From positions 440,801 to 504,800 of the forward strand of contig NW_013657667.1 of NCBI RefSeq assembly GCF_000142905.1: a DNA stretch of 64,000 nucleotides, in the 5' to 3' direction. Source of the DNA: Thecamonas trahens ATCC 50062 (Eukaryota > Protista > Apusomonadida). Below are positions 1 to 35,821 of the stretch, in pieces. The translations under genes were made by a program, and so were the position numbers. Within the stretch, counting starts at the first letter, position 1. Every line of letters starts with the position of its first letter. The notes under the pieces were generated by a model. That model saw nothing but the letters and a program-made list of their open reading frames with translations, did not search any database and was not told where the DNA came from.

Positions 1-3000
1 GTGGGCAGGCTTGCTCGGCGACTGCATCCACAGCGCGGCCTCATCGGGCGCAAAATCGGTGTCGACAAACAGCCGACCGTCACGGTTGCACGCGCTCACC
101 AGCCGCGCAATGTGGTCCTCGGCCATCCGCGTCAGCACTGCGAGCGACTCGACAGGCACCGACGAGTTGGCCATGACGCATCGGGCGCACACAAGCTGCG
201 GCCCGAGCGTGGCGTGCTTGGCCCAAAGATGATCGCTCGCAAACGGAACCTGGCCTGGTTCCTTCCACCGGAACCACCAACCCGACTTGTCACCCTCGCA
301 CATGAGACACGGCTGAATCGGGACGAGCGTGAGCCAGAGAAGAAGGTCGTTGACCGTCTCGGCGCGCCCATTGAGCGACGTCATGGCCAGCTCCAGCTCG
401 ACCTGCGAGTTGAAGCCCACCACCGCCGCCGAACCCGAGAGTTGCGACGAGACATACGCCACGCCGAGACCCTCAAGCCGCTTGTGGATGTAAAACTTGC
501 CGTTCCGCCGAGGAAGGCCGAGAACTACGGCGGCGTGGGGAACAAACGGCTGCCACGCGCACCGCACGCACGCCCGGCGCAGGTGCGCCGCGCACACAGC
601 CGCGGGCGTCGCTTCTGCTGGCCCGACCTCGTTCGACAGCGTCATCTGCACCGTCGACACCATGGCACACGCTGGGCCCAGCGAGGCCTGCAAAACCCGC
701 TGGCCTGGCAGCGAGATGGCAAACTGAGAGTCGGACACCACCGCGCCACAGCACTCGACGACTCTGCCCGAGGCGGTGAGGAGGAGGAACATGTCGTCGC
801 TGCCGTCGTCACGGACCGGTGTGCCGATGATGTCAATAAAGGTGGCGGTGCCGTACTGCACCACCGACACGTCCTCGTAGAGACCCGACTTGGCCGAGGA
901 TGGCGACTCATGGTAGACCGTCACCTGCCCATCCTCCCGGAGGCATGCCACTGACTTTCCAGTCACGGCGACCTTGACAAACGCACCCTTGAGCGCAACC
1001 GTCCGGTCGCCGACGAGGACCAGGACCTGGGCCGACGCGAGCAAGACGGCGGCAACTTCATCGCCGGCCGCCATCTGCACCACCGAGCCGGTGATCTTGA
1101 GCAGTCCCGGTCTGAGGCGCGAGACCTGGACGCCACCCGGGCCTGGTGCCATGTACACATCCCCGTCGGCATTGAGCAAGCTAGAGAGTGTTTCGTCGAC
1201 GTTGCCGGTGAATCTGGTCTTAGTTGGCAACATGGCGGTCACACACCAGACGCGGCCGAGTGCGTCGTGGATGAGCAGGTGCATGGAGCCAAAGACCACC
1301 GATCGCGCCCGGACCTCACGGTGCTCGAGCGCGTGCCCGCGGCCGATGGCCACCAGCCGGAACGGGACTTCGCGCTCCAGCGTAGCGGTAGCGGCAAAGC
1401 CAGACGAGGCATCCGAGGCGGCCAAGTTGCCGGCGCGTGCACCAGCCCGTCCGCCTTTTCGTCGTCCGCCCGAGCTAGCGGCGTTGCCGCTCGACGCTCC
1501 CGCGCCCGCAGCCTCCAGTGCGTCATACGAGGTCTGCGGCATCGAGCCGGTCAGCGTCTCGTAGAGCAAGACTCGCGCCGGCTGCACCGTGTAGTCGTTG
1601 GTGCTGATGTGGCTGTGGCAGCCCCAGTAGAAGACCTCGCCCGAGGTTGTGACGATGGCCAGCGCCGCGTTGGCGCCATCGGCAGTTGACCACGCCACGT
1701 CAGCGACGGTATGGAAGCCGCCAAAAAGCGGAATGCGGACCTTGCACGGGACCATGTGAGCAGTGCCCTCGACAAGCGCAGCGAGGACATATCCCTCATG
1801 ATGAGAGGCTTCAAAGACGGCGGCGAGCGCAGCCCGGTGCCATTCCTCATCGTCCGGCCTGGCGGTGGACCGCTGACCAGGAATCTGCGGCACAAGCTTG
1901 GGGTGACCCCACACGTACAGCGAGCCGTCCTCAGTAATAACCGCCCGCGCTGCAATAGTTGCCAAGCCGTCCATCTTTGACGTCGGGCCAACCGCAATCT
2001 TGCGCGGCTCGCCACGGTGGAGGCCCTCAACCATCATTGGTAGCACAATGTCGACTGACGAGAGTCCTGACGCGCCGCTAGTGCCGCCGCCGTCACCCGA
2101 CGGCTCATCGTCAGCAACGCCACCGGTCGGCGACACGCGGACCGAGGTCATGGAGCCTCCGCTCGCCGCTAGCGCGCCGAACGAGCTGGCGCCCTTCACA
2201 ATACCGACTGGAACACCGAGGCGGGCATCCATGTTAGAGCCCCAGACATAGACTCGACCGGTAGCAGAGACAGCGGCCGAGTGCTCGATGCCTAGCGCGA
2301 CACCGACAATGTGCTCGGCAACGAGCGCGCCAACTAGCTGCGGGGTGGTGATCGGCTCGCCCTGGCTGATGACCAGCCCGAGCTTGCCCGAGTTCTTGTC
2401 GCCCCAGGTGTAGAGCCGACCCTCGGTGTCCAGCGCTGCCGAGTGATAGGCGCCAAGGGCGACGGCCGCAATGCGGACGTCCGGTGAGTCAAAATGAACT
2501 CGCTCGAAGCGGTCGTGGTCAATGTCGCGGTCGCCAAGGCCGAGCTTGCCGTAGTCGTTCTTGCCAACGGTGAAGAGGTGGCCGGCGGCCGAGACCACCG
2601 CTGTGTGACTCACCGACGTGGCGATGTCAACGACGACAATCTGGCCGTCAAGGTCGTCGATCTTGCGGAAGTGCTGGGCGTCGGTCCGGTCGCCGAGCGC
2701 GGCCGGCCTGCTTTGGACGTGTCCGAGCCGCGCCGTGTCGCCGCCACCGGCAGTGTACACGGCGCCGGCAAGCGTCCGGACCACGGTGTGCTTTGGCCCA
2801 CACACCACCTGAACCACATGCTCCTTGGCGCGGGCGAGCGAGTTGACCAGCTCCGGTACGGGCGCGTTGGCCTTGGCGCCGAGGCCAAGCTCTCCAAACG
2901 CGTTGGAGCCGCAAGTGAAGAGCCGCCCGTTGCGGGTGACAAACGCGGCGTGGCCCTCGCCGGCGGCAATGTCGACAATGGCCATGCCCTCGAGAGTGTC

Positions 3001-6000
3001 GATCCGCCCTGGATGTCCGAGCGTCTCCATGCCGGCGAGCGAGAGGCCGTCACCGGTCGTGCGCCCCAGGAACGGTGGGTCGTGTGCCGAAACGAGGCCC
3101 CACGAGAAGACCGCGCCTTCTGAGCTGAGCGCGAGGAGGAACGAGTCGGAGACTGCGACACGGGTGACCTGGATGCCGGCAACGGTGAAAAAGGTCACTT
3201 CCTGCGGCGTCCGGTACTTGAGCATCTCGACCGATTGTGCCATGATCTTGCCGCGGAACTGAAAGACGTTGCCCCAGACAAAGAGCCGACCGTCTGACGT
3301 CACCGCCGCCCCGTAGGTCCGGGCGAGGTCGACCTGGACCACGTCGCGGTGAATGAAAAACTGCTCGACGGCAATGTGGTTCTCCACCTCGAAGGCCGGC
3401 GTGTTGCGGGCCACCTGCAGGTATTGCACGGTCTCTGCCGCGCCACCGCCACCGCCACCATCGCCACCACCATCGGCGCCGTCGTCGTCGGGCGCCGTGC
3501 GGTCGCGGCTGCCGGTCTTGCCGCCGCTCGCGCTACCTTTGCCCGACTCCTTGCCGGATTCAGTCGAGGTGGTGCCTCCGGCCGAGTTCTTGTTCGACCG
3601 CTTCGGCACCGAGTACACAACAGGGGCTTCGAGGTGGTACGGCAGCTGGGGACGGTGTGACATGGCGCCGAGGAGGAACTGGCGCAGCTGCGGATCGGCG
3701 CAGCACTGCGACGGCAGCCGACCCGCGCCGTCCTGGACACACACGTCTGCAGCAATGGGCGCAGGCTGGAGCAGAGAGCGGACAAGTGCCGCATGGCCGC
3801 CGAGCACCGCGAGGTGCAGCACCGAGTTGCCGCGGCCGTCTTGGGCGTTGACGTCGGCGCCAGACTCGCGGAGCGTCTTGACCACAGCCATCTCGCCGGC
3901 AAGGACCGCCAGATGAAGTGGAGTCTGGCCGGCAAAGTTGACGGCATTGACGTCGGCTTTGTACAGGACGAGAAGGTTGACAATCTGGTTGTCGCCAAGC
4001 GCGGCAGCGTCGTGTAGCATGGTGTTGCCGTTTGATGCCGCAGGCACGTTGGTGTCACAGCCCTGCGAGGAGACCAGTGACTGGACAAGCTCGCGGCGGA
4101 GGTCCGGCTCGGGCACGGTGTGCAGGATGACGTGCAGGATGGTGAGACCGTCCGCGTTGAGGGCGTTAAACTGAGGGCCGCGGGTGGCAAGCAGCGGGAT
4201 GAGCGGCATGAGGTCGTTCTCGGCTGCAAGGTGCAGGACCGAGAGCCGCTGCGAGTTGACTAGCGTCAGCTGGAGATCGTCCTTCTCCAGAAGAACACGC
4301 ACGGTGTCCTGGTCCGAGTTGGCGAGTGCAACGTGGATTACGGCGTCGCCGACGTTGTTGACCTCGTTGAGCTTGATGTTCGGCGATTTGAGGAGGAGCG
4401 TGACCGCTTGGGTATCCTTGTCCTGGACTGCCAGGTGCAGCGGCGTCTCGCCTGCCGAGTTCTGGGCGTTGACGTTGCAGTTCTTCTCGACGAGGTGCTT
4501 GACAACGTCGGCAAAAGAGGCCCGCTTGAGCGCGAGATGCAGCGGGGTGTTCAAGTCACGGTCCATGGCCGAGAGCGCCACCGAAGTCAGCTCGTTGATG
4601 ATATGGTTGACAAAGTCGGCTTGGTAGTCGTTCGATGCAATGGCCATGTGCAGGACGTTGCGTCCAAGCGCGTTGTCAAGCCGGCACCTTTCGTTGAGCA
4701 CCTCGACCGACTCCTTGGCTAGGTGCTGACAGAAGAGGAGCTTGGCGAGGCTCGGGTGGCCGTTGATCATGGCGAGATGGATCGGAAGCGCCCAGGCCGA
4801 GTTGGGGACGTCAAACGGCACGCCGTGCGAGATGAGCGCCTTGACCACATTGGTCATCCCGCGCTCGGCGGCGTAGTGGACTGCGGTTGCCCCGTCCGAG
4901 CTGTTGACCTTAAGCGGGTCGAGCTCGCCCTGCAGATGGATCTCACCGTCGTCGACGTCCGAGAGCGAGTCGGACATGCCACCGGCGTCCGAGCCAGAGT
5001 CGTGGCCAACACCGGCGTCCGAGCTCTCGTCGTCTGACGATGAATGACCATCAGCGTCGAGTTTCCCGGAGGCGGCCAGCGTGACAAAGACGGCATCAAG
5101 GACGTCAACAATGATCGAGACGGCGATCTCCTCGGCCACGTCGTAGTTGGAGAGCGAGTAGCCTGCGGCATCAGAGCGCCCTGCGGCAGACCGCCCGGTA
5201 ACTCCAGAGCTGGCGGCCGCACCGGAAAAGGCCACCCGAGTTCCGCTGCGGCGGAGGCTGCCCTGAGCACCTGCAGCACCATTGCCGGACGCCGCCGCGG
5301 CCTTACCTGCTCCTGCCACCTTGGCCTTGTCCGAGCTCGAGCCGCGAACCTCCTCAACTGTCCCTGGGAAGCTTTCGAGCTCAGGCGAGCCGAGCAAGAT
5401 CATGGCGACGTCGGCCAGGCCTGCGCGGACGGCGAGATGGAGCATGGTGTTGTCGTTGCAATCGGTCTCGGCGATCGAAGCACCGGCGCGGATAAGCTGG
5501 ATGGCAAGTTGTGACTCGCCCAGCTCGATGGCAAGGGCGAGCGGGGTCTTGCCGTCCGGGTACGTCTTGCCGTCGATGATCTCAGCGTGAGCGCCACCCC
5601 ACTTGGAGGCCTGGGTCCAGATGCGGGAAATGGTCTTCCATGGCAGGCGCGACTTGACGGCGAGGTGGAGCAAGTTCTCCTTGTCAGCGTTGGTGGCCGA
5701 GGTGTCGATGTAGTTACCGGTGCCAGCCTCGGAAAAGTCCCACACTCGGTCGAACATGCGCGAGGCGGTGTCCGGCGAGCGGAGGAGGTAGTGCATGGGT
5801 GTGTTGCCCGAGGCGTCGACAACGTTGATGTTGACTGGAGCACCGAGCTTGGCCGAGAGCCGGCGCGATGCGGTCGGGTGATTAACAAGCTTGTCAAAGA
5901 CCTCATCGAGGCCCTTTTCGAACACGTAGTGGACGATGGTTGCCTTGTTGTTGTCCACGTGCTCAACGTCAGCAGCTTGGTCAATGAGGTCGACGGCGGC

Positions 6001-9000
6001 GGCGGCATCGCCGTGCTTGCACGCAAGCAGCAGCGGCGTCTCGTTGTTGCTGTTCACGGCATCAAGCACGTCCTCAAAGTCGGAACGGAGGCCGGCAAGC
6101 TTGACCAGCCTGCGCCACGCGCGAAGGTCTGACTGGAAGGACGGCGGCAGGTCTGCGGCGTTGGGCAGCTTGGGTTCGTGAGCCGACCGGCCGTTGTCCT
6201 CATCGTCGCCAGCCATGGTGGCGGCTTCCTCGGCGACGGCAAAATGAAAGGCCGAGAGGACAGCCCAGCGACGGCGACGCGACGACTTGGCGTTTTCAAG
6301 CGAGCGGTGGAGCTTGTTGGCCGCGTTGCGGACCTCCCTCGGCCGGCTAGAGTCCTCCTTGAGATGGATGAGCTCGCCAAGGATGGCAACAACCTCCTCC
6401 TTGCGCATGGACGCGGCCTTGGCTACCAGCGACTGTGTGAGGTTGTGCGAGTGGCGGATGGCGAGGTGCAGTGCGTTGTCATTGTCGCGGGTTGTACACG
6501 CCGGGTTTGCGCCGAGCGCAATGAGCTTGGTGACAAGCGACTCGGGTGCGCCGTTCATGCACGCGTAGTGCAGCGGGGTACGGCCCGAGTCATCGACGCA
6601 CTCGTCGAGCGAGAACTCGGGATCGACTTCGACAATGCGGTCGATGAGCGCCGAAGCGACCGAGGCGCGCGACGGGTTGCGGCACGCGTGGTGGAGCGGG
6701 GTCATACCCTCTCGATCGGTGGCGGTCAGGTTCTCAATAGTGAGCTTGTCTGATGACTCCATCTCGGCAAGGAGAAGCATGGCGATGAGCGAGGCCTGGG
6801 CGTCAGTGATGGGCTTGGCCCCGGCAAGGAGGCTCTTGCCCGACCGCGAGCTCTCAATGCACGAGCAGACGAGGTGGAGCGGCTTGTTGCCAGTCATCTT
6901 GTTCTCGACTACGGGCGAGGCCTTGGCGGCAAGCAGCTCGCGGATGACGGCGACGTCGCCGTTGCGTATGGCGCAATGGAGAATGGGCTCGCCACTGGCG
7001 GTCGCCTTGTCGAGGACTGAGACGTAGGTCTCGCTGGCACCCTCACGCATTTTCTCACCGGTCGAGGCCTGGATGAGTAGCTTGACAAGCGTGGTGTTGC
7101 CCATGCGGTAGGCATGAAGCAGCGGCGTGCCCGGCGGCGAAGCGGCATCCGAGACGCCAAGCGCGTCCTTGTGGGCGTTGATGAGATCCATCGCAACCTT
7201 GGAGAGCAGCTTGTCCAGCGCAGAGTGCTCGGCAGTAGTGGCCGTCATGCAGAGGACATGTAGCGGGCGCTGGTGAGTGACCTTGGTCTCCTGCGCAGCG
7301 AGGGCGGCGACAGCGTCGGACGGACCGGAGCCCTTGGCCGACTTGGACGCCGAGGCCAGTGCCGCCGTCGAGTTGCGCGACTTGCTCTTGACGCCCTTGC
7401 CCGAGAGTAGCGAGTGCGCGATCTCCAGCTTGGTCCGCGCGAGGCGGAGGTCGTCGACCTTGCATGCCAGGTGCAGCGGGTTCTCGTAGTCGACGGTGAG
7501 TGCGTTTTCCGGAACAGCGCCCTCACGGACAAGCGCGGTGACGACCGAGGTGAGGCCCTTGTCGACAGCAAAGTGCAGGGCGGTAGCCTTGGTGGCGGTC
7601 GAAGTGTGATTGACCTCTACGTTGGCAGCAATGAGCTTGAGCGCAAGCTCAGGCTCACCGATGGCACAGGCGCGCATGAGCGGCGTCTCGCCGCGGGCGT
7701 TCGGCACCGCCACGCCATGGCCGTCCTCGATGAGCTTGTGGGCAATGTGACGGAACGACTCGGCATAGGCGACACCGACACCAGCGAGCTGGTCGAGCGC
7801 CACGTGCAAGAGCGCGTCGAGCTCGACGTCGGCCTCAGGGCGATCGAGGAGCGACATGGCAATCGCGGCGTGACCCATCTTCATGGCATAGTAGATAGGC
7901 GTTCGCGGCTCGTCGCTCTCCTCGGCGAGGAGCGCCGGTGTGTGGGTAGCCAGCGGCGTAGCCTTGAGCGACGCGTCGGCGTTCCAACGGAGTAGAAGCG
8001 CGGTGAGCTTGGGCAAGCCACCGGCGGCAGCATAGTGGAGCGGCGTCCATCCGCCAAGACCTTGCGAGTTGATCATGAGTGAGACGTACTCAGTCTTGGA
8101 CCGGTGGTTCGCCACAAAGTGCTCAATGAGGAAGAGCGCAATGGCGTCGTCGCCGGCATCGAGCATGGCGTACTTACACGCCATGTGAATAGGCAGGTCT
8201 AGGTTCTTGTCGGCCCGCATCGAGCCGCCGCCGCGACCAACGAGCGCACGCACAACGTCCATGAGGCCCTTGCGGGCAGCGTAGTGAAGCGCGGTCTGCT
8301 CCTCACGGTCGTTGGCGTTGACATCGGCGTTGGCGCGGAGGAGGTGCATGGCTAGCTCGGCATGGCGCGAGGCACAGGCAGCAATGAGCGGCGTCTGCCG
8401 TTGTGCGCCGGGCTGGTCGACACCCACACCGTGGGCGAGCAGATACTTGGTGAGCGAGACCAGGCCCGACCGGGCAGCAAAGTGGATGGCGGCCTCAGAG
8501 TCGACGTTCGAGTCCGAGAGGTTGATCTCGAGCGTGGGAACGGCCTCGACTGTCCGCACCACCCACAGCGCAGTCGACGACTTGTTGGCTTTGCACGCAA
8601 CAAGGAACGGTGTCTGCTCCTTTGAGTCCTTGACCATCTCGACGCCTGGAATGAGGAGCATGGCAACAACGACAGCGGTCATGCCGTGAAGCGCAGCATA
8701 GTGGAGCGGCGTCGACTTGAGCCCGCTCTTGTCGGAGCGGGCTACCGCCATCGGGTCGCATCCAAGTCCAAGAAGCATGAGAGCTGCATGCATGTACCCG
8801 CGGCGACAGGCGCGAATGAGAGGCTGGCCCTCCATGACCGAGAGTCCGTGCCGGATGAGCTTCCCAAGAATGTAGGGGAACGGAAGCGCCTCGAGCAAGA
8901 GCGACTTGGCAACCATGACGTCGGCCGCCCAGTCGACGGCAGCATGGTTGAGCAGCGCAGAGGCGACGTCAAAGTTGGCAGCCTGGATAGCGAGGTGGAG

Positions 9001-12000: not shown

Positions 12001-15000
12001 CAGCTGCGGCACACCGTTGCCAGTCACTCGCGCCGAGACGTTGGCGAGCGCATTGGCGAGGACGTTGGAGCGCGAGAGGACGTGCTCTGCAGAAACACCA
12101 GCGTCTGCGCTGGCAGCGGTGCCGCCGCGGCGCCGCGAACTCTCTTTGGCGGGCAAGTAGTGGCCAGCGTGCTTGATGAGTGGCTCGTTGTGGCGAGTGA
12201 GCTTGAAGAGAAGAGCGGCGAGAATGGTGAGCGAGCGGGTCTGGCCGAGGGCTTCCTTGGCAAAGTTGAAGAGGTAGACCGCGACTGCATCAACAAGCTC
12301 GATGTCGCCCTCTTCGTAGGCGGCGAGCCCGATGCCGTCGCAGGCGTGGGCAAGGAGGAACGGGAGGACGGGCGAGTCGCCCTGGCCCTCGAGCGAGGCC
12401 GCGAGTGCAGTCGACGCGTTGAGCCGCTCGATAAAGGTCTGGGCGTCGGCGGCGAGAAGGAGGAGCGAGTTGACGTCACGACCGGATGAGATCGACTCGA
12501 TGAGTGGGGTGATGCCCGACTGTGTTTCCGAGTCGATAACAACCTCAAAGCGAGTAGCGAGGAGGAGGCCGAGGACGTGCGGCATGTTGGCCTTCTCGAC
12601 TTGGTCGAGTAGACCGACGCCGATCTCGTTCTCGCAAAACCGCAGGCCGATTTCCATCGATGGCTGCGGGAGAAAGGCAACAAGTAGTGCGGCGAGCGAG
12701 ACGTCGCCGCGGGCGACGGCAACCTGGATGGGATTCCGCGACGAGGCGTCGGGCATGGTAAAGAGCCGCATGAGGACGTACCACGCGAGATGGGAGCGCG
12801 AGTTGGAGACTTGAATGTTGGAGATGAGGCCGCGGACAAACGAATAGTGGCCAGCGGCCGCGGCGCGGTGAAGAATCGGCGCGGTGACGCCGATCGAGTC
12901 GGTCGACATGGTGGTGAGGCCGGAAATCTCGAGCATGCCGAGTCCGACGTCGAGCGAGCGCGGCGATTTGATAGTTGTCTCGACAAGCGCAAGAAGGACT
13001 TCCGACTGGATCTGGTTGGTGACAGTGGCCTGGGCGACCAGGTCTGTGACCAGAAAGGCAGCCACGTCGAGGTACGACGAGAGAAGCGCGGCGTGGACAA
13101 GCTCGGCAATGGTGTTGAGCGAGTAGTCCTTGGCCCGTGAGACCGAGACCGAGGCCGAGAGCGACGAGTTTGGCGCGCTGCTGCCAGCGGCCTTTGCCAG
13201 CCGTGACGTTCCGGTCAAAGTGCTCGAGGCGTCCGACGCGGTGTCTGCGAGCGCCTTGAGGAGCGCCCGGAGCAGGCCAAGCTGGCCGGCAGAGACAGCA
13301 TAATGCAGCGGCGACTGGCGTTTGTCATCCAAAAAGTGGAGGCACATCGAGCCGTAGATGTCGTACAACCGCATGGCGACCTTAGTCATGGCATGCATGC
13401 AGGCAAAGTGCATCGGGGTGCGCGAGTGGGCGTCGCGGGCCATAATTCGCCACGACTCGCGCTTGCGCTTGGACGGCGAGGTAGACGAGCGGCCCGAGTG
13501 GGCAGCCATGCCCTCGTCGGAGATCTTAAAGGCGTCGATATGGTCGAGGAGGGTGAGGGCAATGATCTCGTTTCCAGCCTCGCAGGCGACAATGAGCGGC
13601 GTCCGCTGCATCGAGTCACGGCCAAAGAGGTCGACGAAAATGAGATCGGTCTCAGAGAGCATCTCTTCTGAGCGCTCCTTGGTGGCACCGTCGGCAGCGG
13701 CGCTTCCGGTCAAGGCCGCAGTCGAGCCGGACTTGCCCTTGCGCCCGACCATGGCATCAAGGCGTCGCCGCTTCGGCTCGGAGACGGCGCCGGTGGTGCG
13801 CGAGGCCGTGCTCTGGGCGTCGCGCGGGATGCGGGCAACGTTACGCATGTCAGGAGAGAACGGAATGGCCTCGTCGCGGGCCAGAGCGAGGCTCAGCTGT
13901 CGAGTCGACGAGTCGAGGCGAATGAGGGCACGGACAACTGAGTCGAGCGAATGAGCGACGGCGAGGTGAATGAGGGTCGCCTGAGTCATGTCTGCGCCAT
14001 TGATAAAGGCGTTGATAAAGAACGCACCCTTATCCGCCAGCGACGGAATGGTCCGCCTCAGTGACGGCATGGTGAGGGCGTCGATCATCCAGTGGAGGAG
14101 TGAGACATGGCCGCCGCGGGCAGCAAGGTGAAGTGCCGACGAGCCGTCGGCCGCCAGTGCGTAGACTTCAACGCCGGCGCGGGCGAGCGCGGTGACAACG
14201 GTTGTGTCGCCGGCGCGGGCGGCGTAGAGAAACGGCGAGAGGCCCTGGGCGTCGAGCGAGTCGAGGAACTCGGCAAGCGCGGTCCGCGCGCGCATGACGT
14301 TGGCGGAGACTGAAGCGCCGCCGGACGAGTTACCGCCGCCCTGGCGACGACGGGCGAGGGCGGTCATGTCACGCGACGAGGTCGTGGCCGTCGCCTTGAT
14401 ACTCACATTGGCCACAAAAGCCGGCTGCGAGGCAAAGAGCGAGGCCTGTAGGCCGCCAGCGGTCTCCATCTGTGCCTCGAGCGCTTTGATGAGCAGGAGC
14501 GAGAGCTGAGTCAGCTTCCGCTTGCAGGCGTAGTGGAGGACGGACCGGCCTTTGGAGTCGAGGAGCTCGGTCTTGGTCCCCTCCCATCTGAGGAGCTCGG
14601 TGGCGATGAACGGGCGGCGGAAGGCAGCGGCGACAATGAGCGGAGTGCGGAGCTCAGCGTTGCGGGCGTTGACGTCGAGCTCGACCTGGTGGGCGTCGGC
14701 GCGCTGGCGGAGAATGCCCAACACCTCGCCCATGCCGGACCGGGCTGCGTAGTGGAGGACGGTGTTGGAGAACGCGTCTTGGGCGTTGACAAAGAGCTCG
14801 AGTGCGTGCGAAGAGGCGCTCCACATGGCAAAAGCCTTGTCGATGATGAGCTTGGCGACTTCGGAGAATCCCGAGGCTACCGCTACGTGGAGAACGGTCT
14901 GCGAGTCAATGTTGAGGGTGTCGAGCTGAACATCGTCGCGCTGGAGCAAGGTGGCTACGAGGTTGACCATGTTGCGCGAGACGGCCTCCATGAGCGGCGT

Positions 15001-18000
15001 CGTCGACTCGGTTGGCGACTTTCCGTGTGTGAGCGGTCCGGTGGTGCCCGACGCGGTGGACGCGTTAATGGGCGAGCCGATGGTGACCAGCCGGATGGCA
15101 AGCTCCTCTTTCCCGCGAAGAATGGCCTCGTGGAGAAGGGTTGTCTGACCGTGACGGATGGTGGTGGGAGCGCGCGAGCGCGGGAGGAGTAGGACCTGGC
15201 CCTCGACCAGTGTCCGGACCGGTGCTGGGACAGGCGGCCAGTGGGAGGTGCTCGAGGTGTGGACCTTTTCCTGGCCGCTGCCTCGCGGGGGCGAGTTGGT
15301 GGGGGCGGCACCGCTGGCGTCTGGGGCGGTAGCCCGGCTTGGCGAACTTGGCTCGTCGCCTCCGGCCGAGACCTGGAGCGCGATGGTTGACGAGATGTTG
15401 GCGCTCGAGGCAGCGACGCGCAGGTCCGTGGCTGCGGCTTCTGCGTAGCGAGCGTCAAAGTCCGCCCCGAGGAGCTTGGTAGCAGCCGAGCCGTGGAGCC
15501 GCAGGTGTGCGGCAAGCGAGGAGCCCGGCGAGAGGACCTGGCGCGAAAAGGCGAGTGCCGACGGGAGAAAAGCGTTGAGGAGCGAGACGGTGTCCGGGTG
15601 CATGGTCTGTGGGACGTAACCTTGAACAGAGACGCTCTCAAAGCCAAGGCCACGGGCGTAGAGCGCGGCGCCACGCTGGGCTGAGCAGAAGAAAGCCGAA
15701 TCGCCGCGACGCGAGCGGTAGAGGACAAGCGGAAGCGTGTCGGGCATGTCAATAGCGTAGATGTACTTGCCGTACTTTGCCGAGAGCGACGGCGGAATGA
15801 CCGAGGCGGCACAGCATCCGGCAGCATGGGTATACCCATGATTGGAGACGAGATCGGCAATGGTCTCCGGCGAGGCGACGGGCAAGACCGACGACGAGTC
15901 GCTGCCAAACTCCTCGCGGATGAGAAAGTGTAGCTCAAGATAGTTGGTCGGGTAGTCGGCCATGCCGGCGCGCGAACCGAGGATGGAGACGCCGAGCTTG
16001 GTCTCTGCAAACGGCGGGCGGGCGTCCGGCGCGGCGGAGCCATTGTCCGAGGCCGCGGCCGCGGCCGCGGCCTTGGGAACATACAGGTCACAGAGGCGAA
16101 AGAGGGCGTCGACAAGCTCGGGAACAGAGTCGGGCGGCGCGCCGAGGGCGAGGTGCATCGGAGTCTCCTGGGTCGGGTTCCAGTTGTCGCTCATGACCGA
16201 GCGGAGGAGAACCTTGCGGAGCTCCGAGCCGACCTCGTCGTTGGAGTGGGCGAGGTCGACAACGACGCCTACGACGTCTGTGGCCGCTGCAGCGAGGGCA
16301 ACGTGGAAAAAGGTATGCATGTTGTTGTTGCGGGCACGGACAAGACCTTCGATGTCGAGAGCAGCGATGATGAGATCGCGGACAAGCTCAGCATGCCCGT
16401 GCTTGGCGGCGGCGTGGAGCAGGGTGTTGCCCTCGGCATCGACGAGGCTCATGCGGAAGAGCGAGCTCGCAGCAGTGGTGTACTGGGCAGTCGAGCGCGA
16501 GTTGTCCTCGTTGATGGGCGGCTCGCGCTCGCGCCGGACGTCAGGGTGGACATCTGCCGAGTACGGGAAAAGCTGGCTGATGAGGTCAACATGGCCGGCG
16601 GCGAGCGCCATGTGCAGCGGCGGGAGCTCGATGAGGGCGCCAGCAGCCATCGAGTGGACCGGATGGCGCGGCTCGAGAAAGGCCGGCGAGCAAAGAAGCG
16701 CGAGCGCGACAAGGTCGTCGCCAACCGTGACTGCGTGATGGAACGGAGTGTAGCGGCGACCGTCCTGGGCGTTGATGTCTGCGCAGCCGGAAATGATGAT
16801 GTTGATGGCAATTTCCGAGTGGCCGGCAGCAATGGCGAGATGGAGCGGGCGCGCGCCATGGATGTCGGGCGCGTCGAAGAGGCCCTTGTCGATAAAGGTG
16901 TCGGCAATGTCCGAGTAGAGGCCCGCCATGCCCTTGTCTGCGGCGTAGTGCAGGAGGGTGCGGCCGCGGTCGTCAGCGGCGGTGATGTCGATACGGTGGA
17001 GCTCCGCGGCCGGGGCATGGTTCTTCGTCTTTGGCTTGACGGCTGCCAGAAAAGAAGCGACGGCCTCGTGGCCATTGTGGGCAGCAGCAAGGAGCGGCGG
17101 CCGGGCGGCGGCGCCGCGGACGTGAATGTCGAGCCCGAGGGAGTAGAGGAGCGAGAGGCAGCCGAGCTTGCCAGTCTTAGCCGCGCAAGTAAGGAGTGTG
17201 TCGCCAACGGTGTTGGTCACAAACGAGTAGTTGACGGTCTGTGACGAGAAACGCGACTTTTGAAAGTCGTTCTTGGTGAGCGCCACCGGCTCGACGTGGT
17301 CCAGTCTCGGATTCTGCTCGCCGCCGGTGTCCGAGTCGGCGTCGCCAGCATCAGGTGTGGGCTCGGGCTCGGGGGCTGCCTCGCCACGGCGTGGCTTGTG
17401 GCGGGTGCGGCGTGGCTCGCTGGTCGGCGCAGCGATGGCAGCGGCGAGGGAGGTGTCCGGGAACGGATCGTACTTTGGCGTAAAGCCGTGGACGCGCTCA
17501 AAGTAGAGGCTAACTACCTTTGACGTCGGAACGTCCGCAAGTGAGGCCGAGACAAGCTTGAAGAGTGGGAGCTCGCCGTCGGCGTCAGGGCGCGACCAGG
17601 CGGTAGCGAGCACGGTCGGGTGGGTGCGCTCCATCCAAAAAGTAAGGAAGCGGACACAGCCTGTGGCGGTGGCACGGTGGAGCGGGGTCGAGTGCGGGGC
17701 GCCGTCGATGTGAGCCGCGAGAAGGACAAGGACCGAGGCGGTGTCGAGGTGCGGGAGGCCCATGACCTTGGCGAGCTGGTCGAGCGAGCCGAGCGGACAG
17801 GCCTTGGCGGCGGCGTCCTTCGCGATGGTGAGGGCGACGTCATCATGGCCGTGGTGGGTGGCGGCATAGAGTGGAGTCTGCGACTCGGCGTCGATGGCAA
17901 AGGGTGATGCGTGCTTGGCAAGGAGGGCGCGGACTACGGCGTTGTAGCCTGCGGCGGCAGCGAGGTGCAGTGGGGTGGCGCGGGCGTGAAGGTCGTGCAT

Positions 18001-19935
18001 GTCAACAGCGGCTGGGGCGTATGCCTCGCCGGCGGGCCGGCCGAACGCGTCCTCGAGCGACTCGATGCGGCGAGAGACGCTGCGGGAGGACGACATAGCG
18101 CCACGGCGCGAGGTGACGTCACCGGCGGCGGCGGCGGCGACAGAGTTCTGGTTCTTACGGGCCTCCTTGTGAAAGGCGACGGCGCAGTTTGCAGTGGCAA
18201 GAGCCGGTCCGCTAGCCGGGACAGTCATGTTGGGCGAGATGGCAGAGGAGGAAACCGGGCTTCGCTGCGGCATCTCGATGGCCTTGGTCGCCGGCGCGGC
18301 ATCGACAAGAAGCAGGGCGATGGTAGGACGCCTGTGCAGGAGTGCAAGGTGAAGCGCAGTATTGCCTTCGGCATCACGATCGAGTAGATGGAGAGCGGGC
18401 TTGAAGACCTTGGACGAGAGAAGGGTGCGGACAAAGCGCTCCTGGTTGGCGACGATAGCAGTCATAAGCGGGGTGTAGAGCTCGGGTCCGGCGCGAAGCT
18501 GGGGGCTTGCGCCGGCAGACATGAGATCCGAGGCCAGCGGGGCGGCGAGCTTTTCCGAGGCTGCGTAGTGGAGGGCGGAGCGGCCGTTCGCATCACGGGT
18601 GTTGACGTTTGCGCCTGCGGCGAGGAGCGAGTTGACGACCGACTTGTGGCCGTTGCGGACGGCAAGAAGAAGCGGGGTGAAGCCGCGAGTGTCGCGGGTA
18701 TCGACGGCGGCCCCGGCCTCGACGCGCGGCATGCGCTCGGAAGAGAGCAGGGCGTCAACGACGCGGGAGAGGCCACCAGCGGCCGAGTAGAAGAGGGCGG
18801 AGCGGCGAAAGGCGTCACGGGCAGTGGCATCGACACCGCGGACGTTGAGGAGCTCTAGGGCGATGGCGGCGCGACCGGCGATGCAGGCAGCAATGAGAGC
18901 GTTGGCGCCGGCATGGTTGCACGAGTTGTACGCGCCTGGCAGGAAGGTCGGCGGTAGCTCGGCGATCTTGGCAATGAGGATGCGGACAAGGGCGACCGAG
19001 CCACGACAAACGGCGTAGTGAAGAACAGTGTCACCGTCCATGTCGCGGAGGTAGAGCATGGCGTTGAGTGGAAGCGCAGCGGCAATGGAGCCCGACTGGG
19101 CGTAGGTGAGGGTGAGGGCATCCTCGGCCGGATCGCCCTGTAGCAGGATGTCGTGCTTGGCGGCGGCGGCAGCAGCAGACGCAGTGAGGTCGTCGTCGTC
19201 TTCGAGACGAGACGGGCCCGGGCGGTGCCTTGCCCGGCTCGCCTCGCCGAGCATGGGCGCCATGACATCCTCCATTTCCGCGGTGACGGCAGCAAGGAGG
19301 ATGCGGATGACAGCGTTGGAGGCATTGGCGACAGCGAGGTGGAGCGGGGTCTGTCCGCGGGCGTTGCGGGCCATCATTTCACGCATCCGCTCGATGGGCA
19401 GCTCGGCGTCGAGGAGCGCCTCGACCACCGGTCCGTTGTCAGCCTCTGCAGCCAGATGCAACAGGGTGTTGCCATCATGGTCGCGGAGCATGAGCAGCGA
19501 GGCGTCGCGGCGGACGACCACCGTCGTCACCATGGCCGCGGTCCGCGCCGTCGGCGGAGCAAAGGCCATGATCTGCACAGCATTCAGCTCGCGGCGGCGC
19601 GAGGAGGAGAAGATCTCGTCGACGTCTGCAACCTTGGAAAGCGCCGAGGCAACGGCGGCAGCTGAGCGTGCAGCAGCGGCAGCAGATTGGCGAGAGCCTC
19701 GCGGGCCATCGCCACCAGCAGCAGGAGGCACTGCTCCTGCGCCGGCAGCCTCAGCCGACGCCTCCTCCAGTCGCTTGTCGGCCAGAAACGGAGGCGGATC
19801 ATAGGAAAAGGTGAACTTGGTCACAAGAACCGAGTCGAATCGAGTATCGTAGCCACGAAGGTCTCCCGCGAGAGCCTTTCCGAACAGCTCGCGGGCCTTG
19901 GCCGTCTCCTGGGCCAGCTCTGTCTGCGTTGCCAT
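1..19935 (-). CDS. Giant (>=6645 aa, 3'-truncated) protein: ankyrin repeats + RCC1 repeats + probable calpain domain
   Basis: ATG at 19935 (MATQTELAQETAKARELFG...). The track lists no minus-strand ORF in this frame over 1-19935, and about 30 plus-strand shadow ORFs share its register; both fit one open frame with no stop inside the window. Segments I translated by hand show ankyrin repeats at ~3700-19500 (GNTLLHLAAEAD, GQTPLHLAVAN, GFTPLLLAVRNGH, GETPLHLAVQ) and RCC1 repeats at ~650-3350 (AYHSAALDTEGRLYTWGDKNSGKLGL, GRLFTCGSNAFGELGLG). A calpain-type N-terminal motif (LVSACNRDGRLFVDTDFAPDEAAL) lies at ~31-102. Confidence 0.9.
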   Translation of the reverse strand, partial: MATQTELAQETAKARELFGKALAGDLRGYDTRFDSVLVTKFTFSYDPPPFLADKRLEEASAEAAGAGAVPPAAGGDGPRGSRQSAAAAARSAAAVASALSKVADVDEIFSSSRRRELNAVQIMAFAPPTARTAAMVTTVVVRRDASLLMLRDHDGNTLLHLAAEADNGPVVEALLDAELPIERMREMMARNARGQTPLHLAVANASNAVIRILLAAVTAEMEDVMAPMLGEASRARHRPGPSRLEDDDDLTASAAAAAAKHDILLQGDPAEDALTLTYAQSGSIAAALPLNAMLYLRDMDGDTVLHYAVCRGSVALVRILIAKIAELPPTFLPGAYNSCNHAGANALIAACIAGRAAIALELLNVRGVDATARDAFRRSALFYSAAGGLSRVVDALLSSERMPRVEAGAAVDTRDTRGFTPLLLAVRNGHKSVVNSLLAAGANVNTRDANGRSALHYAASEKLAAPLASDLMSAGASPQLRAGPELYTPLMTAIVANQERFVRTLLSSKVFKPALHLLDRDAEGNTALHLALLHRRPTIALLLVDAAPATKAIEMPQRSPVSSSAISPNMTVPASGPALATANCAVAFHKEARKNQNSVAAAAAGDVTSRRGAMSSSRSVSRRIESLEDAFGRPAGEAYAPAAVDMHDLHARATPLHLAAAAGYNAVVRALLAKHASPFAIDAESQTPLYAATHHGHDDVALTIAKDAAAKACPLGSLDQLAKVMGLPHLDTASVLVLLAAHIDGAPHSTPLHRATATGCVRFLTFWMERTHPTVLATAWSRPDADGELPLFKLVSASLADVPTSKVVSLYFERVHGFTPKYDPFPDTSLAAAIAAPTSEPRRTRHKPRRGEAAPEPEPTPDAGDADSDTGGEQNPRLDHVEPVALTKNDFQKSRFSSQTVNYSFVTNTVGDTLLTCAAKTGKLGCLSLLYSLGLDIHVRGAAARPPLLAAAHNGHEAVASFLAAVKPKTKNHAPAAELHRIDITAADDRGRTLLHYAADKGMAGLYSDIADTFIDKGLFDAPDIHGARPLHLAIAAGHSEIAINIIISGCADINAQDGRRYTPFHHAVTVGDDLVALALLCSPAFLEPRHPVHSMAAGALIELPPLHMALAAGHVDLISQLFPYSADVHPDVRREREPPINEDNSRSTAQYTTAASSLFRMSLVDAEGNTLLHAAAKHGHAELVRDLIIAALDIEGLVRARNNNMHTFFHVALAAAATDVVGVVVDLAHSNDEVGSELRKVLLRSVMSDNWNPTQETPMHLALGAPPDSVPELVDALFRLCDLYVPKAAAAAAASDNGSAAPDARPPFAETKLGVSILGSRAGMADYPTNYLELHFLIREEFGSDSSSVLPVASPETIADLVSNHGYTHAAGCCAASVIPPSLSAKYGKYIYAIDMPDTLPLVLYRSRRGDSAFFCSAQRGAALYARGLGFESVSVQGYVPQTMHPDTVSLLNAFLPSALAFSRQVLSPGSSLAAHLRLHGSAATKLLGADFDARYAEAAATDLRVAASSANISSTIALQVSAGGDEPSSPSRATAPDASGAAPTNSPPRGSGQEKVHTSSTSHWPPVPAPVRTLVEGQVLLLPRSRAPTTIRHGQTTLLHEAILRGKEELAIRLVTIGSPINASTASGTTGPLTHGKSPTESTTPLMEAVSRNMVNLVATLLQRDDVQLDTLNIDSQTVLHVAVASGFSEVAKLIIDKAFAMWSASSHALELFVNAQDAFSNTVLHYAARSGMGEVLGILRQRADAHQVELDVNARNAELRTPLIVAAAFRRPFIATELLRWEGTKTELLDSKGRSVLHYACKRKLTQLSLLLIKALEAQMETAGGLQASLFASQPAFVANVSIKATATTSSRDMTALARRRQGGGNSSGGASVSANVMRARTALAEFLDSLDAQGLSPFLYAARAGDTTVVTALARAGVEVYALAADGSSALHLAARGGHVSLLHWMIDALTMPSLRRTIPSLADKGAFFINAFINGADMTQATLIHLAVAHSLDSVVRALIRLDSSTRQLSLALARDEAIPFSPDMRNVARIPRDAQSTASRTTGAVSEPKRRRLDAMVGRKGKSGSTAALTGSAAADGATKERSEEMLSETDLIFVDLFGRDSMQRTPLIVACEAGNEIIALTLLDHIDAFKISDEGMAAHSGRSSTSPSKRKRESWRIMARDAHSRTPMHFACMHAMTKVAMRLYDIYGSMCLHFLDDKRQSPLHYAVSAGQLGLLRALLKALADTASDASSTLTGTSRLAKAAGSSAPNSSLSASVSVSRAKDYSLNTIAELVHAALLSSYLDVAAFLVTDLVAQATVTNQIQSEVLLALVETTIKSPRSLDVGLGMLEISGLTTMSTDSIGVTAPILHRAAAAGHYSFVRGLISNIQVSNSRSHLAWYVLMRLFTMPDASSRNPIQVAVARGDVSLAALLVAFLPQPSMEIGLRFCENEIGVGLLDQVEKANMPHVLGLLLATRFEVVIDSETQSGITPLIESISSGRDVNSLLLLAADAQTFIERLNASTALAASLEGQGDSPVLPFLLAHACDGIGLAAYEEGDIELVDAVAVYLFNFAKEALGQTRSLTILAALLFKLTRHNEPLIKHAGHYLPAKESSRRRGGTAASADAGVSAEHVLSRSNVLANALANVSARVTGNGVPQLGLALGASTSANATSEPLSATGSVPKSMLHELYDAAIENRRLDVMPLLHVAVGLPTRDQYMRMLEMMVGVNESAVDIAYLGHTLSEATALSLFNDLYAEEKQRNEASIRKTAAAAATPDGEQTEDEVVDAGADHLVLRSWVVPSTRHSVLHLAAKLAMPGLFETVFVAMVAEEEEALRARQAQGTLDNDGDDGFDDEFDFEQRAGYDGEPDSPRSLADRAHIAVLGLLDESAYSVVHYVVDKAVPYFTQWFFDTFAPPVVGGNARNGLVPWLQTSHKTESVVNMLAAHGHFALLENLFAACPSDAFKRKLVTTKSSLTASTVLHTAIASGSVATAHVVLDQLLARLTDRKERCAALFTARNTERCVPLQLAAAQGMGTVVQAILARDEKRSGISVAEPLRVALESGFVSIAIQLVQGGVDAIARHKAQNAGSIFVAGSTNPLSLVCARGFEPVLNKFKSGHGIVRTLLKIDMPLMGALVNGKLALVKQLWTKGVERPEGYFLRALSRSYTALVMFMLGADDTLTRFKALSRHLPPLDINAKSSTNRFQQTALHLAVANSLEDVIVPLLRRKPEFVGDLFGFNPLHYAVLKKDTRYAQLLLSPLARASMVVSGSAEAQGKLSYLHLAARNSVFMLKLILRVSELSRLVANADAKAGGVKTGRAARRSRGGRGRGTGPTSHLPPTLPSIEVAVGGPIPAMHDVRVNIQFAENLQNSEMAKTGDWSLAHLTGSLVGFDASRTIAGRSPSTRASVRASMADPASGASRTPEFVFVDLNANIDVSDLQPFTVQVNARMTTDETPLLIALVSFRGSAAKTELDKFLELGTPASRAATIAEGFRLLQSKHSAADESASAGHVVAGSASGVYPADDGDALEHPFVARFSARDGRSSYGSLLPRVDVALELLRRPPAPLEVRVASGKRYSPLSVAIEIGHPELVKLLLPFASESAFQSGSCEPTHLTRHALTAAGSIQSMSQPKSSSQGPAVTANAAVPASTSRNSRLTPLHLAIQAANFDVASALLNHAAVDWAADVMVAKSLLLEALPFPYILGKLIRHGLSVMEGQPLIRACRRGYMHAALMLLGLGCDPMAVARSDKSGLKSTPLHYAALHGMTAVVVAMLLIPGVEMVKDSKEQTPFLVACKANKSSTALWVVRTVEAVPTLEINLSDSNVDSEAAIHFAARSGLVSLTKYLLAHGVGVDQPGAQRQTPLIAACASRHAELAMHLLRANADVNANDREEQTALHYAARKGLMDVVRALVGRGGGSMRADKNLDLPIHMACKYAMLDAGDDAIALFLIEHFVANHRSKTEYVSLMINSQGLGGWTPLHYAAAGGLPKLTALLLRWNADASLKATPLATHTPALLAEESDEPRTPIYYAMKMGHAAIAMSLLDRPEADVELDALLHVALDQLAGVGVAYAESFRHIAHKLIEDGHGVAVPNARGETPLMRACAIGEPELALKLIAANVEVNHTSTATKATALHFAVDKGLTSVVTALVREGAVPENALTVDYENPLHLACKVDDLRLARTKLEIAHSLLSGKGVKSKSRNSTAALASASKSAKGSGPSDAVAALAAQETKVTHQRPLHVLCMTATTAEHSALDKLLSKVAMDLINAHKDALGVSDAASPPGTPLLHAYRMGNTTLVKLLIQASTGEKMREGASETYVSVLDKATASGEPILHCAIRNGDVAVIRELLAAKASPVVENKMTGNKPLHLVCSCIESSRSGKSLLAGAKPITDAQASLIAMLLLAEMESSDKLTIENLTATDREGMTPLHHACRNPSRASVASALIDRIVEVDPEFSLDECVDDSGRTPLHYACMNGAPESLVTKLIALGANPACTTRDNDNALHLAIRHSHNLTQSLVAKAASMRKEEVVAILGELIHLKEDSSRPREVRNAANKLHRSLENAKSSRRRRWAVLSAFHFAVAEEAATMAGDDEDNGRSAHEPKLPNAADLPPSFQSDLRAWRRLVKLAGLRSDFEDVLDAVNSNNETPLLLACKHGDAAAAVDLIDQAADVEHVDNNKATIVHYVFEKGLDEVFDKLVNHPTASRRLSAKLGAPVNINVVDASGNTPMHYLLRSPDTASRMFDRVWDFSEAGTGNYIDTSATNADKENLLHLAVKSRLPWKTISRIWTQASKWGGAHAEIIDGKTYPDGKTPLALAIELGESQLAIQLIRAGASIAETDCNDNTMLHLAVRAGLADVAMILLGSPELESFPGTVEEVRGSSSDKAKVAGAGKAAAASGNGAAGAQGSLRRSGTRVAFSGAAASSGVTGRSAAGRSDAAGYSLSNYDVAEEIAVSIIVDVLDAVFVTLAASGKLDADGHSSSDDESSDAGVGHDSGSDAGGMSDSLSDVDDGEIHLQGELDPLKVNSSDGATAVHYAAERGMTNVVKALISHGVPFDVPNSAWALPIHLAMINGHPSLAKLLFCQHLAKESVEVLNERCRLDNALGRNVLHMAIASNDYQADFVNHIINELTSVALSAMDRDLNTPLHLALKRASFADVVKHLVEKNCNVNAQNSAGETPLHLAVQDKDTQAVTLLLKSPNIKLNEVNNVGDAVIHVALANSDQDTVRVLLEKDDLQLTLVNSQRLSVLHLAAENDLMPLIPLLATRGPQFNALNADGLTILHVILHTVPEPDLRRELVQSLVSSQGCDTNVPAASNGNTMLHDAAALGDNQIVNLLVLYKADVNAVNFAGQTPLHLAVLAGEMAVVKTLRESGADVNAQDGRGNSVLHLAVLGGHAALVRSLLQPAPIAADVCVQDGAGRLPSQCCADPQLRQFLLGAMSHRPQLPYHLEAPVVYSVPKRSNKNSAGGTTSTESGKESGKGSASGGKTGSRDRTAPDDDGADGGGDGGGGGGAAETVQYLQVARNTPAFEVENHIAVEQFFIHRDVVQVDLARTYGAAVTSDGRLFVWGNVFQFRGKIMAQSVEMLKYRTPQEVTFFTVAGIQVTRVAVSDSFLLALSSEGAVFSWGLVSAHDPPFLGRTTGDGLSLAGMETLGHPGRIDTLEGMAIVDIAAGEGHAAFVTRNGRLFTCGSNAFGELGLGAKANAPVPELVNSLARAKEHVVQVVCGPKHTVVRTLAGAVYTAGGGDTARLGHVQSRPAALGDRTDAQHFRKIDDLDGQIVVVDIATSVSHTAVVSAAGHLFTVGKNDYGKLGLGDRDIDHDRFERVHFDSPDVRIAAVALGAYHSAALDTEGRLYTWGDKNSGKLGLVISQGEPITTPQLVGALVAEHIVGVALGIEHSAAVSATGRVYVWGSNMDARLGVPVGIVKGASSFGALAASGGSMTSVRVSPTGGVADDEPSGDGGGTSGASGLSSVDIVLPMMVEGLHRGEPRKIAVGPTSKMDGLATIAARAVITEDGSLYVWGHPKLVPQIPGQRSTARPDDEEWHRAALAAVFEASHHEGYVLAALVEGTAHMVPCKVRIPLFGGFHTVADVAWSTADGANAALAIVTTSGEVFYWGCHSHISTNDYTVQPARVLLYETLTGSMPQTSYDALEAAGAGASSGNAASSGGRRKGGRAGARAGNLAASDASSGFAATATLEREVPFRLVAIGRGHALEHREVRARSVVFGSMHLLIHDALGRVWCVTAMLPTKTRFTGNVDETLSSLLNADGDVYMAPGPGGVQVSRLRPGLLKITGSVVQMAAGDEVAAVLLASAQVLVLVGDRTVALKGAFVKVAVTGKSVACLREDGQVTVYHESPSSAKSGLYEDVSVVQYGTATFIDIIGTPVRDDGSDDMFLLLTASGRVVECCGAVVSDSQFAISLPGQRVLQASLGPACAMVSTVQMTLSNEVGPAEATPAAVCAAHLRRACVRCAWQPFVPHAAVVLGLPRRNGKFYIHKRLEGLGVAYVSSQLSGSAAVVGFNSQVELELAMTSLNGRAETVNDLLLWLTLVPIQPCLMCEGDKSGWWFRWKEPGQVPFASDHLWAKHATLGPQLVCARCVMANSSVPVESLAVLTRMAEDHIARLVSACNRDGRLFVDTDFAPDEAALWMQSPSKPAH

Positions 19936-20598
19936 GTGTGTGAGGCGAGCGGGAGAGATAGAGAGGGAGGGGGTGGGGGTGGGGGTAGGGGTTGGGGAGG
20001 GGGTGTGGGGGCTGTATGTATGTGTGTTTGTGTGGTGGTGTGGGTGTGTGTGGTGTGGGTGGGTGTGGGTGGGTGGGTGTGTTGGAGTGGGGTGAGTGGA
20101 GGCTGGCGGTGGTGCTGCCACCGGGAGGGAGGGTGAGACGGACAGTGGTCGGTGTGGTGAAGACAGTTGGAAGTGGTATGCCATGGAATGGAGAGAGTGG
20201 TCGAGGGAGAAGGAGAGGGATTTTCAACCTTTTTAACCGATTTGTCAGCAGGGCACATCCAGCCATCCACACATGTCCACACACACACAGAGAGAGAGAG
20301 AAAGAGAGAGAGTACACCATCATCCAATCCACAACTCTGATCCATGTACGTGTGTGTGCGTATGTGTGGATGTGTGTGTGTGGATGTGGATGGTTGGCTG
20401 GTACAGCGGGTGTGCCCGTGAGCAGCGTGGGCTACGATTAAATCTCAATGAATTTACTGTCATTGCTGACGGCAGATAGTTGCCAACCGTCAGTTGCGCT
20501 CGCCAGCTACCCCCCCCCCTCCCACCCCCCTACCACCAGCTCCACCAGCACCTCACCCAACACTCCTCTCTCACTCACTCGCTCGCTCTTGCACTAAT
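19936..20598. promoter_or_regulatory. Divergent intergenic region / putative bidirectional promoter, rich in GT/CA/GA microsatellites and G/C runs
   Basis: Lies between head-to-head ATGs at 19935(-) and 20599(+); low complexity and non-coding. Confidence 0.45.
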
Positions 20599-35714: not shown

Positions 35715-35821
35715 TGCACCCACACACTCCACCACACACACACATACACACACATACACACACACACACGCATACATACATACATACATACATACGCATA
35801 CATACATACCTACACATACTC
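35715..35821 (+). repeat. (CA)n/(CATA)n microsatellite immediately upstream of the kinesin ATG
   Basis: Read directly from the sequence. Confidence 0.85.

Follow-up and report, generated by a model that had tools for sequence, protein, structure and literature searches.

A 22.7-kb intronless gene of Thecamonas trahens predicted to encode an ankyrin-RCC1 giant whose calpain core lacks the catalytic cysteine

Results

A stop-free frame of 7,554 codons running off the edge of the window

Thecamonas trahens is a marine flagellate, an apusomonad belonging to the sister group of Opisthokonta. The window analyzed here is a 64,000-nucleotide stretch of the genome of strain ATCC 50062 (G000:C13:440801-504800), which begins with one giant open reading frame (ORF) on the minus strand encoding ankyrin repeats, RCC1-like propellers and the start of a calpain core. 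An original prediction, made from the letters of the window, had proposed that this frame is open from the ATG at position 19935 to base 1. Indeed, translation detected no stop in these 6,645 codons, and the frame continues outside the window: the neighboring DNA adds 909 codons up to a TAA ending at C13:438071, i.e. 2,726-2,729 nt past window base 1. The full ORF comprises 7,554 codons (22,665 nt including the stop), is intronless and encodes a protein of 801.5 kDa. The mechanical ORF list lacks it because the frame runs off the window end, the very explanation that had been offered. The elements of the gene are given below, with window positions unless a contig is named.

19936..20186, minus strand: upstream in-frame stretch of 83 codons
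1..19935, minus strand: window portion of the ORF, codons 1-6645 of 7,554 (translation, coding statistics)
19471..19935, minus strand: N-terminal non-repeat region, residues 1-155 (own hidden Markov model, HMM)
3745..19470, minus strand: ankyrin-repeat region, residues 156-5397 (Pfam Ank families and own HMM)
3349..3744, minus strand: Gly/Ser/Asp low-complexity spacer, residues 5398-5529 (entropy scan)
2191..3348, minus strand: first RCC1-like domain (RLD1), seven-bladed propeller, residues ~5530-5915 (Pfam)
640..2094, minus strand: RLD2, probable degenerate propeller with low-complexity insertions, residues ~5948-6432 (weak Pfam match and fold match of the AlphaFold2 (AF2) model)
301..555, minus strand: RRM-fold domain, beta-alpha-beta-beta-alpha-beta, residues 6461-6545 (AF2 model, fold search)
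169..309, minus strand: Cys4 knuckle, C-x2-C, W-x2-W, PF, H, C-x2-C, residues 6543-6589 (alignment)
1..135, minus strand: start of the CysPc core, first 45 residues (Peptidase_C2)
C13:439856-440935, minus strand: CysPc core, residues 6601-6960, almost wholly outside the window
within C13:438074-439855, minus strand: C2L-like domain, split, residues 6961-7015 and 7151-7285 (iterated search)
within C13:438074-439855, minus strand: acidic insert of 135 aa splitting the C2L-like domain, residues 7016-7150
within C13:438074-439855, minus strand: Tyr/Gly/Gln/Pro-rich tail, residues 7374-7451, then an Arg-rich end (entropy scan)

A chance origin of the frame is excluded. From the base composition of the strand 172 stops would be expected (log10 P of zero = -75.7), the remaining five frames contain 76-327 stops each, and the longest open run in 50 shuffles did not exceed 401 codons. 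The GC content at third codon positions (GC3) is 0.79 across the ORF and stays between 0.73 and 0.84 in all 300-codon bins, matching the neighboring kinesin and polyprenyl synthase genes. A repeat scan found no tandem DNA repeats within the giant ORF, which thus did not arise in the assembly by stringing together copies of a single unit.

Upstream of position 19935 the frame stays open for a further 83 codons and offers an alternative ATG with its first base at 20184. This stretch is CA/TG microsatellite-like, would be translated into a Pro/Thr/His-rich sequence and is probably 5' untranslated region (UTR). In the N-terminal alignment, residues 109-545 of this protein pair with residues 102-504 of the paralogue AMSG_05321 (see below), which favors the start at 19935 over that at 20184. 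A microsatellite-like TG/GGGTGG tract (window 19965-20099) lies directly upstream of the start codon, and a comparable CA-rich tract was seen ahead of the ATG in a metagenomic RLD-calpain gene on contig L024.

Ankyrin repeats, RCC1-like propellers, an RRM fold and a Cys4 knuckle precede the calpain core

The predicted domain order, from ankyrin repeats through RCC1 blades to the start of a calpain, was recovered in searches with the Pfam families Ank, RCC1 and Peptidase_C2. Ank families cover residues ~150-5400, with Ank_2 matching in three pieces (E 7.8e-106, 2.3e-95 and 2.1e-55). With an HMM trained on repeats of the protein itself, ~65 ankyrin repeats were recognizable between residues 156 and 5397, which occur in tandem with the 33-residue length of the ANK repeat and form more than 20 clusters. 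The clusters are separated by gaps of 90-535 aa, previously taken for unique inserts. Most of these are not low-complexity according to the entropy scan, and the language-model neighbors of the largest gap were ankyrin clusters, which is weak evidence. The gaps are probably degenerate repeats; of the proposed alternation, the repeats stand and the unique inserts probably do not.

RLD1 is a seven-bladed propeller of RCC1 repeats (WD40_RLD E 2.6e-127, 425.6 bits vs a cut-off of 150; RCC1 E 2.4e-45). Its closest solved relatives are the RLDs of HERC1 (3e-55) and HERC2 (6e-49), followed by RPGR, UVR8 and RCC1. Two propellers had been proposed, the second of them degenerate, and for this second one the support is moderate. 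RLD2 produced a sub-threshold Pfam WD40_RLD match (E 1.4e-4) and no PDB match by sequence search, and its AF2 model is mostly beta and of low confidence (predicted local distance difference test, pLDDT, 43). The top seven fold matches of this model are all RCC1-like (Z 18.9-20.4): WBSCR16, HERC2 RLD3, RPGR and RCC2, each at Z 20.2-20.4, as well as Prp20, RCC1 and UVR8, while generic WD40 propellers score lower (16-17.7). Judging from the model, RLD2 is a probable second RCC1-like propeller.

Behind RLD2, the AF2 model contains an RRM-fold domain (pLDDT 65-86) that matched dozens of RRMs (Z 8.7-10.2, root-mean-square deviation (rmsd) 1.7-2.5 A over 70-80 residues). No Pfam RRM family was detected up to E 10, neither in the whole protein nor in the isolated piece. 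The RNP1/RNP2 consensus of RRMs includes aromatic RNA-binding residues; here, strands beta1 and beta3 read VVLGLP and AAVVGF and the consensus aromatics are absent. The domain more likely serves protein contacts. The Cys4 knuckle that follows is invariant in all four family members, shows low pLDDT in the metal-free AF2 model and is presumed to be a zinc site. Pfam scans of the whole protein revealed neither a HECT nor a BTB family.

The calpain core has lost the cysteine of the catalytic triad

The calpain-like start at the window edge belongs to a complete CysPc domain lying almost wholly downstream of the window (Peptidase_C2 E 4.5e-32, 111.7 bits vs a cut-off of 23.8; calpain-1 E 2.7e-15). 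The AF2 model of this core has a pLDDT >90 and matches calpain-9 and calpain-1 at Z 28.6, with an rmsd of 3.2-3.3 A over 294-302 residues. By sequence as well as fold, the domain is a CysPc domain of the calpain superfamily.

Pairwise alignment with human calpain-1 and an alignment of 14 sequences (this protein and 13 relatives) both place Asp6691 at the position of Cys115; the triad cysteine is missing. Lys6685 is found at the position of the oxyanion Gln109, while His6875 and Asn6895, the equivalents of His272 and Asn296, are retained. All four residues lie outside the window and therefore could not be seen when the original prediction was made. Its proposal that the scaffold controls local proteolysis or self-cleavage is unsupported for this copy, in which Asp6691 and Lys6685 replace the Cys and the Gln. 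Cys6689, located two residues upstream of Asp6691, was considered as a shifted nucleophile and rejected: it is Ala in the orthologues P0008 and P0158, and a shifted nucleophile is thus not conserved. Alignment with calpain-1 was also used to inspect the calcium sites, counting as ligands those of the calpain-1 core structure. In site 1, the equivalents of Asp106 and Glu185 are kept. In site 2, three of the four side chains are altered (Glu302 to Ser, Asp309 to Asn, Asp331 to Gln) and Glu333 is kept.

The C2L-like domain gave no match to PF01067 (Calpain_III) even at E 10, and Pfam searches in which the C2L, RRM and tail pieces were submitted singly were blank. An iterated search starting from residues 7140-7290 converged on tandem Calpain_III repeats of other calpains, and PF01067 was confirmed in P0029 and P0073, two calpains reached in this way. 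AF2 modeled the region poorly.

A collinear paralogue retains the intact active site

Protein P0009 of the public collections (AMSG_05321; XP_013758031.1; UniProt A0A0L0DDB7) comprises 7,268 aa and is annotated as 'hypothetical / ankyrin repeat protein'. It was considered as an orthologue from another species, which was ruled out, as it maps to contig C22 of the same T. trahens genome (G000:C22:322820-344855; L028, L026, L029). According to BLAST matches it is collinear with the present protein from the N-terminus to the tail. Both giants are of similar size and share the order Ank, two RLDs, RRM-like domain, Cys4 knuckle, CysPc, C2L-like domain and Tyr/Gly/Gln-rich tail, including the CxxC, WxxW, PF, H, CxxC motif ahead of CysPc; giants of this type correspond to no named family.

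In contrast to the present protein, AMSG_05321 retains the full set of Gln, Cys, His and Asn and hence an intact active site; its second RLD is more canonical, and its ankyrin region contains a Cys-rich insert missing here. Moreover, the public model of its gene gets across four frame changes by way of introns of ~30 nt, the gaps handled in this way measuring ~5-35 nt. In addition, ~800 nt of the gene are duplicated in tandem almost exactly (C22:330927-331697 and 331717-332520); errors of sequencing or assembly may lie behind the frame changes and the duplication, or they may be genuine. The C-terminal modules of the two giants are only 27-41% identical, indicating that the duplication is old. 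The idea of a tethered protease suits AMSG_05321 better than the present gene.

Roughly 5 kb downstream of AMSG_05321, a short calpain with an 896-aa open frame is encoded on the minus strand (C22:349360-352047; L027). It has lost the nucleophile (LLSTTYLLG), is 31% identical to AMSG_05321 vs 27% to the present gene, and is probably AMSG_05324, for which 'H,N' is entered by Zhao et al. 2012 (PMC3563603).

Marine orthologues share the substitutions in the active site

Residues 5946-7145 were used as HMMER query against a database of 1.84 billion representatives of any length. This search returned 1,231 calpain matches, of which no more than three groups resemble the query beyond the core. P0008 and P0158, which derive from marine metagenome contigs (one from Tara Oceans), are 49% identical to the whole 1,200-aa query and carry the identical Asp and Lys substitutions. 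On contig L004 the orthologue ORF has no stop as far as the contig start and reaches into RLD1 sequence. P0008 and P0158 are fragments of orthologues. Identity to the orthologue peaks in CysPc (63%) and C2L (58-67%) and falls to 38% for RLD2 and 28% for the tail; despite the lost nucleophile, CysPc counts as the best-conserved module of the C-terminal third.

The P0011 group (1,755-1,862 aa) comes from Tara Oceans and other marine metagenome contigs in ENA. Its members share with the present protein an RLD, the Cys4 knuckle, CysPc, part of C2L and an inactive triad; they differ in that all three triad residues are lost and in that the ankyrin region is probably absent, because the ATG follows UTR-like CA-rich sequence. 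A Tara Oceans scaffold (L024:391-5973) from a marine eukaryote encodes an RLD-knuckle-CysPc protein of 1,860 aa without the Cys, His or Asn and probably without ankyrins, a short and fully dead representative of this family.

A quick tree of CysPc sequences joins this gene to its orthologue above a long stem (1.56), whereas their own tips are short (0.39 and 0.26), a pattern compatible with rapid change once the duplication had occurred and with constraint thereafter. Both fall into a clade with a support of 97 that also contains AMSG_05321 and P0011 and whose internal order was not resolved.

Further searches returned no additional relatives of this kind. A scan of JGI metagenomes with the family alignment yielded 80 loci, all of them generic calpains (22-30% identity) and none with the knuckle or an adjacent Ank or RLD. 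Among proteins of 3,655-11,629 aa, a search for full-length relatives with residues 5600-6645 recovered nothing but giant RCC1 proteins, all lacking a calpain domain, and an N-terminal query among proteins of 1,833-5,833 aa gave generic ankyrin proteins only. Downstream of the orthologue, its contig carries Rad21 and a gene of 362 aa, neither of which had a match in the 17 kb downstream of the T. trahens gene. Near-identical DNA to the window is present in estuarine and marine metagenomes.

The gene appears to be missing from public protein sets, and RNA contigs suggest its transcription

No self-match of this ORF was found in the public proteins searched, i.e. the any-length set queried with residues 5946-7145, the proteins of 3,655-11,629 aa, and the proteins of 1,833-5,833 aa queried with the N-terminus. 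Other T. trahens proteins, including AMSG_05321 and AMSG_11778, are present in these collections; the gene appears to be missing from them.

The T. trahens calpains described by Zhao et al. 2012 number 12 and measure 693-1,855 aa, and the species was singled out there for its calpain diversity (PMC3563603). Neither giant is among these 12, and both Ank and RCC1 are absent from the table of 24 calpain partner domains in the same study (PMC3563603). Our six-frame search detected 18 Peptidase_C2 matches in the T. trahens genome, and the published count looks too low. Two later calpain reviews make no mention of an Ank/RCC1-calpain combination, and our literature search found no paper citing AMSG_05321. 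The architecture had been put forward as unrecognized. This holds as far as published descriptions are concerned, none being found of a calpain on such a scaffold, but the architecture is not unique to this gene, since the collinear AMSG_05321 is encoded in the same genome and present in public databases.

Window positions 1-6000 are matched at 99-100% identity by contigs that stem from three subsurface metatranscriptomes and one from seawater, four RNA libraries in all. These contigs are scattered, falling in the end of the ankyrin region, RLD1, RLD2, the linker and the start of the calpain; they contain no splice-like joints and suggest that the locus is transcribed. At window 3440-3475, within the Gly-rich spacer, a depth spike of 98 made up of partial contigs of other organisms from the seawater metatranscriptome was observed, which reflects the low-complexity composition and not expression.

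Discussion

Taking the two statements as one joint proposition, we consider it likely that this ORF is a real intronless nuclear gene of T. trahens encoding one protein, and that the calpain core of this protein is a pseudoprotease, making it a non-catalytic giant scaffold or regulator rather than a protease. The loss of the catalytic cysteine makes a scaffold more likely than a protease, and the Asp shared with the metagenomic orthologues, along with the high conservation of CysPc, points to a pseudoprotease under selection. In such a protein, the ankyrin solenoid and the propellers may dock partners, possibly small GTPases, and the dead calpain cleft would bind calpain-type substrates or regulators rather than cut them. 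The protein could act beside or against its active paralogue AMSG_05321. CAPN6 and the kinetoplastid calpain-like proteins would provide analogues for a non-catalytic role.

Several observations weigh against this interpretation. The CysPc tree groups the two giants in a supported clade (97) without resolving them as sisters, and the evidence for the RLD2 and C2L assignments is weak. Formally, Asp6691 or the neighboring Cys6689 could still serve as nucleophile. The RNA evidence is patchy, as it consists of metatranscriptome contigs over 6 kb only, for which DNA carry-over is possible, and thus covers a part only of the putative single 22.7-kb transcript.

Alternatively, the protein might be a dedicated regulator or decoy of AMSG_05321, the two forming an enzyme/pseudoenzyme pair that shares partners or assembles together. 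This is unlikely in our view. Two collinear giants in one genome, of which only one has the triad intact, would be accounted for, as would the strong constraint on the dead domain; however, the low identity of the C-terminal modules (27-41%) speaks for an old duplication. Going further, the giants could be an ancient enzyme/pseudoenzyme pair restricted to apusomonads and their near kin in the sea and could act as 800-kDa springs of ankyrin repeats in the cortex or proboscis cytoskeleton, in which RCC1 propellers would read the state of small GTPases and the dead calpain would gate or compete with AMSG_05321. We give this picture little chance of being right; if true, it would represent a new way to position and regulate proteolysis by calpains in a lineage that is sister to animals and fungi.

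Very unlikely is a still-active protease with a non-canonical nucleophile, corresponding to the tethered sensor-protease initially proposed, in which Cys6689, or Asp6691 together with His6875 and Asn6895, would carry out catalysis. Conservation argues against the former, Cys6689 being Ala in P0008 and P0158; in addition, the oxyanion Gln is replaced by Lys, and three of the four side-chain ligands of calcium site 2 are altered. On the other hand, His and Asn are retained, the surrounding motif is strongly conserved, and for calpains of brown algae and oomycetes a review of 2026 brings up triads that are shifted but possibly functional (PMC13413365). Finally, that the ORF is not one functional gene, the frame being divided among several transcripts or else a relic, decaying or not expressed, that the annotators rightly left out, is scarcely credible: the missing protein model in public collections and the putative nature of the single transcript would agree with it, but 7,554 stop-free codons where 172 stops are expected, the uniform gene-like GC3, an orthologue that is 46-63% conserved and stop-free with an ORF reaching the contig edge, and RNA-library contigs across ANK, RLD, linker and calpain start all contradict it.

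Several known systems come close to the protein. Inactive calpains such as mammalian CAPN6, the kinetoplastid calpain-like proteins and Rhodnius Calpain A/B2 likewise combine the CysPc fold with a substituted nucleophile and are kept under selection, but they stay below ~1,500 aa, combine CysPc with different domains and contain no Ank, RLD or RRM. The present protein is further distinguished by the exchanges of Cys to Asp and Gln to Lys with His and Asn kept. Non-proteolytic roles are reported for inactive calpains (PMC3731218, PMC7912814, PMC11387712). HERC1 and HERC2 are giant multi-RLD scaffolds as well, and it is their RLDs that RLD1 resembles most; unlike in these proteins, no HECT domain was found here and the C-terminal enzyme-type module is a calpain. 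Proteins of the IBTK type consist of ankyrin and RCC1-like repeats with BTB domains following the RLD. They have in common with the present protein that ankyrin repeats are followed by RCC1-like repeats, but no BTB domain was found here, and the present protein is far longer, with many more repeats and a calpain module. The succession of Ank, RLD, RRM fold, Cys4 knuckle and CysPc is an unreported calpain architecture within a known superfamily.

Reconstructions of the ancestral opisthokont gene set draw on Thecamonas, whose genome serves as a reference for the group that is sister to animals and fungi; a gene ranking among the largest in this genome is apparently absent from public protein sets. 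The natural pair of an active and an inactive paralogue offers a clean system to address the role of a conserved dead calpain domain. We regard the gene as a curiosity with a testable question, which solves no long-standing problem.

Neighboring genes in the window

The remaining genes in the window are tightly packed and located on both strands. A GC-rich, intronless giant ORF could also suggest a kinetoplastid source; this was rejected in view of the gene orientations and of the neighboring ORF that matches T. trahens AMSG_11778 at 100% identity. Runs of N, either assembly gaps or withheld sequence, are found at window 26009-26108, 42380-42479, 46726-47385 and 53026-53292, none of them inside the giant ORF. 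The genes recognized are as follows.

22494-25349, minus strand: PHD-like zinc fingers, FYRN, FYRC and SET, an MLL/Trithorax-type layout
28087-31038, minus strand: Laminin_G_3 protein
35546-37669, plus strand: kinesin motor
38684-41578, minus strand: XRN 5'-3' exonuclease
56352-57896, minus strand: polyprenyl synthase AMSG_11778, 100% identical, annotated 'partial'
58111-59688, minus strand: class I/II aminotransferase

The kinesin, XRN, Laminin_G_3, polyprenyl synthase and aminotransferase genes each appear as one long single ORF.

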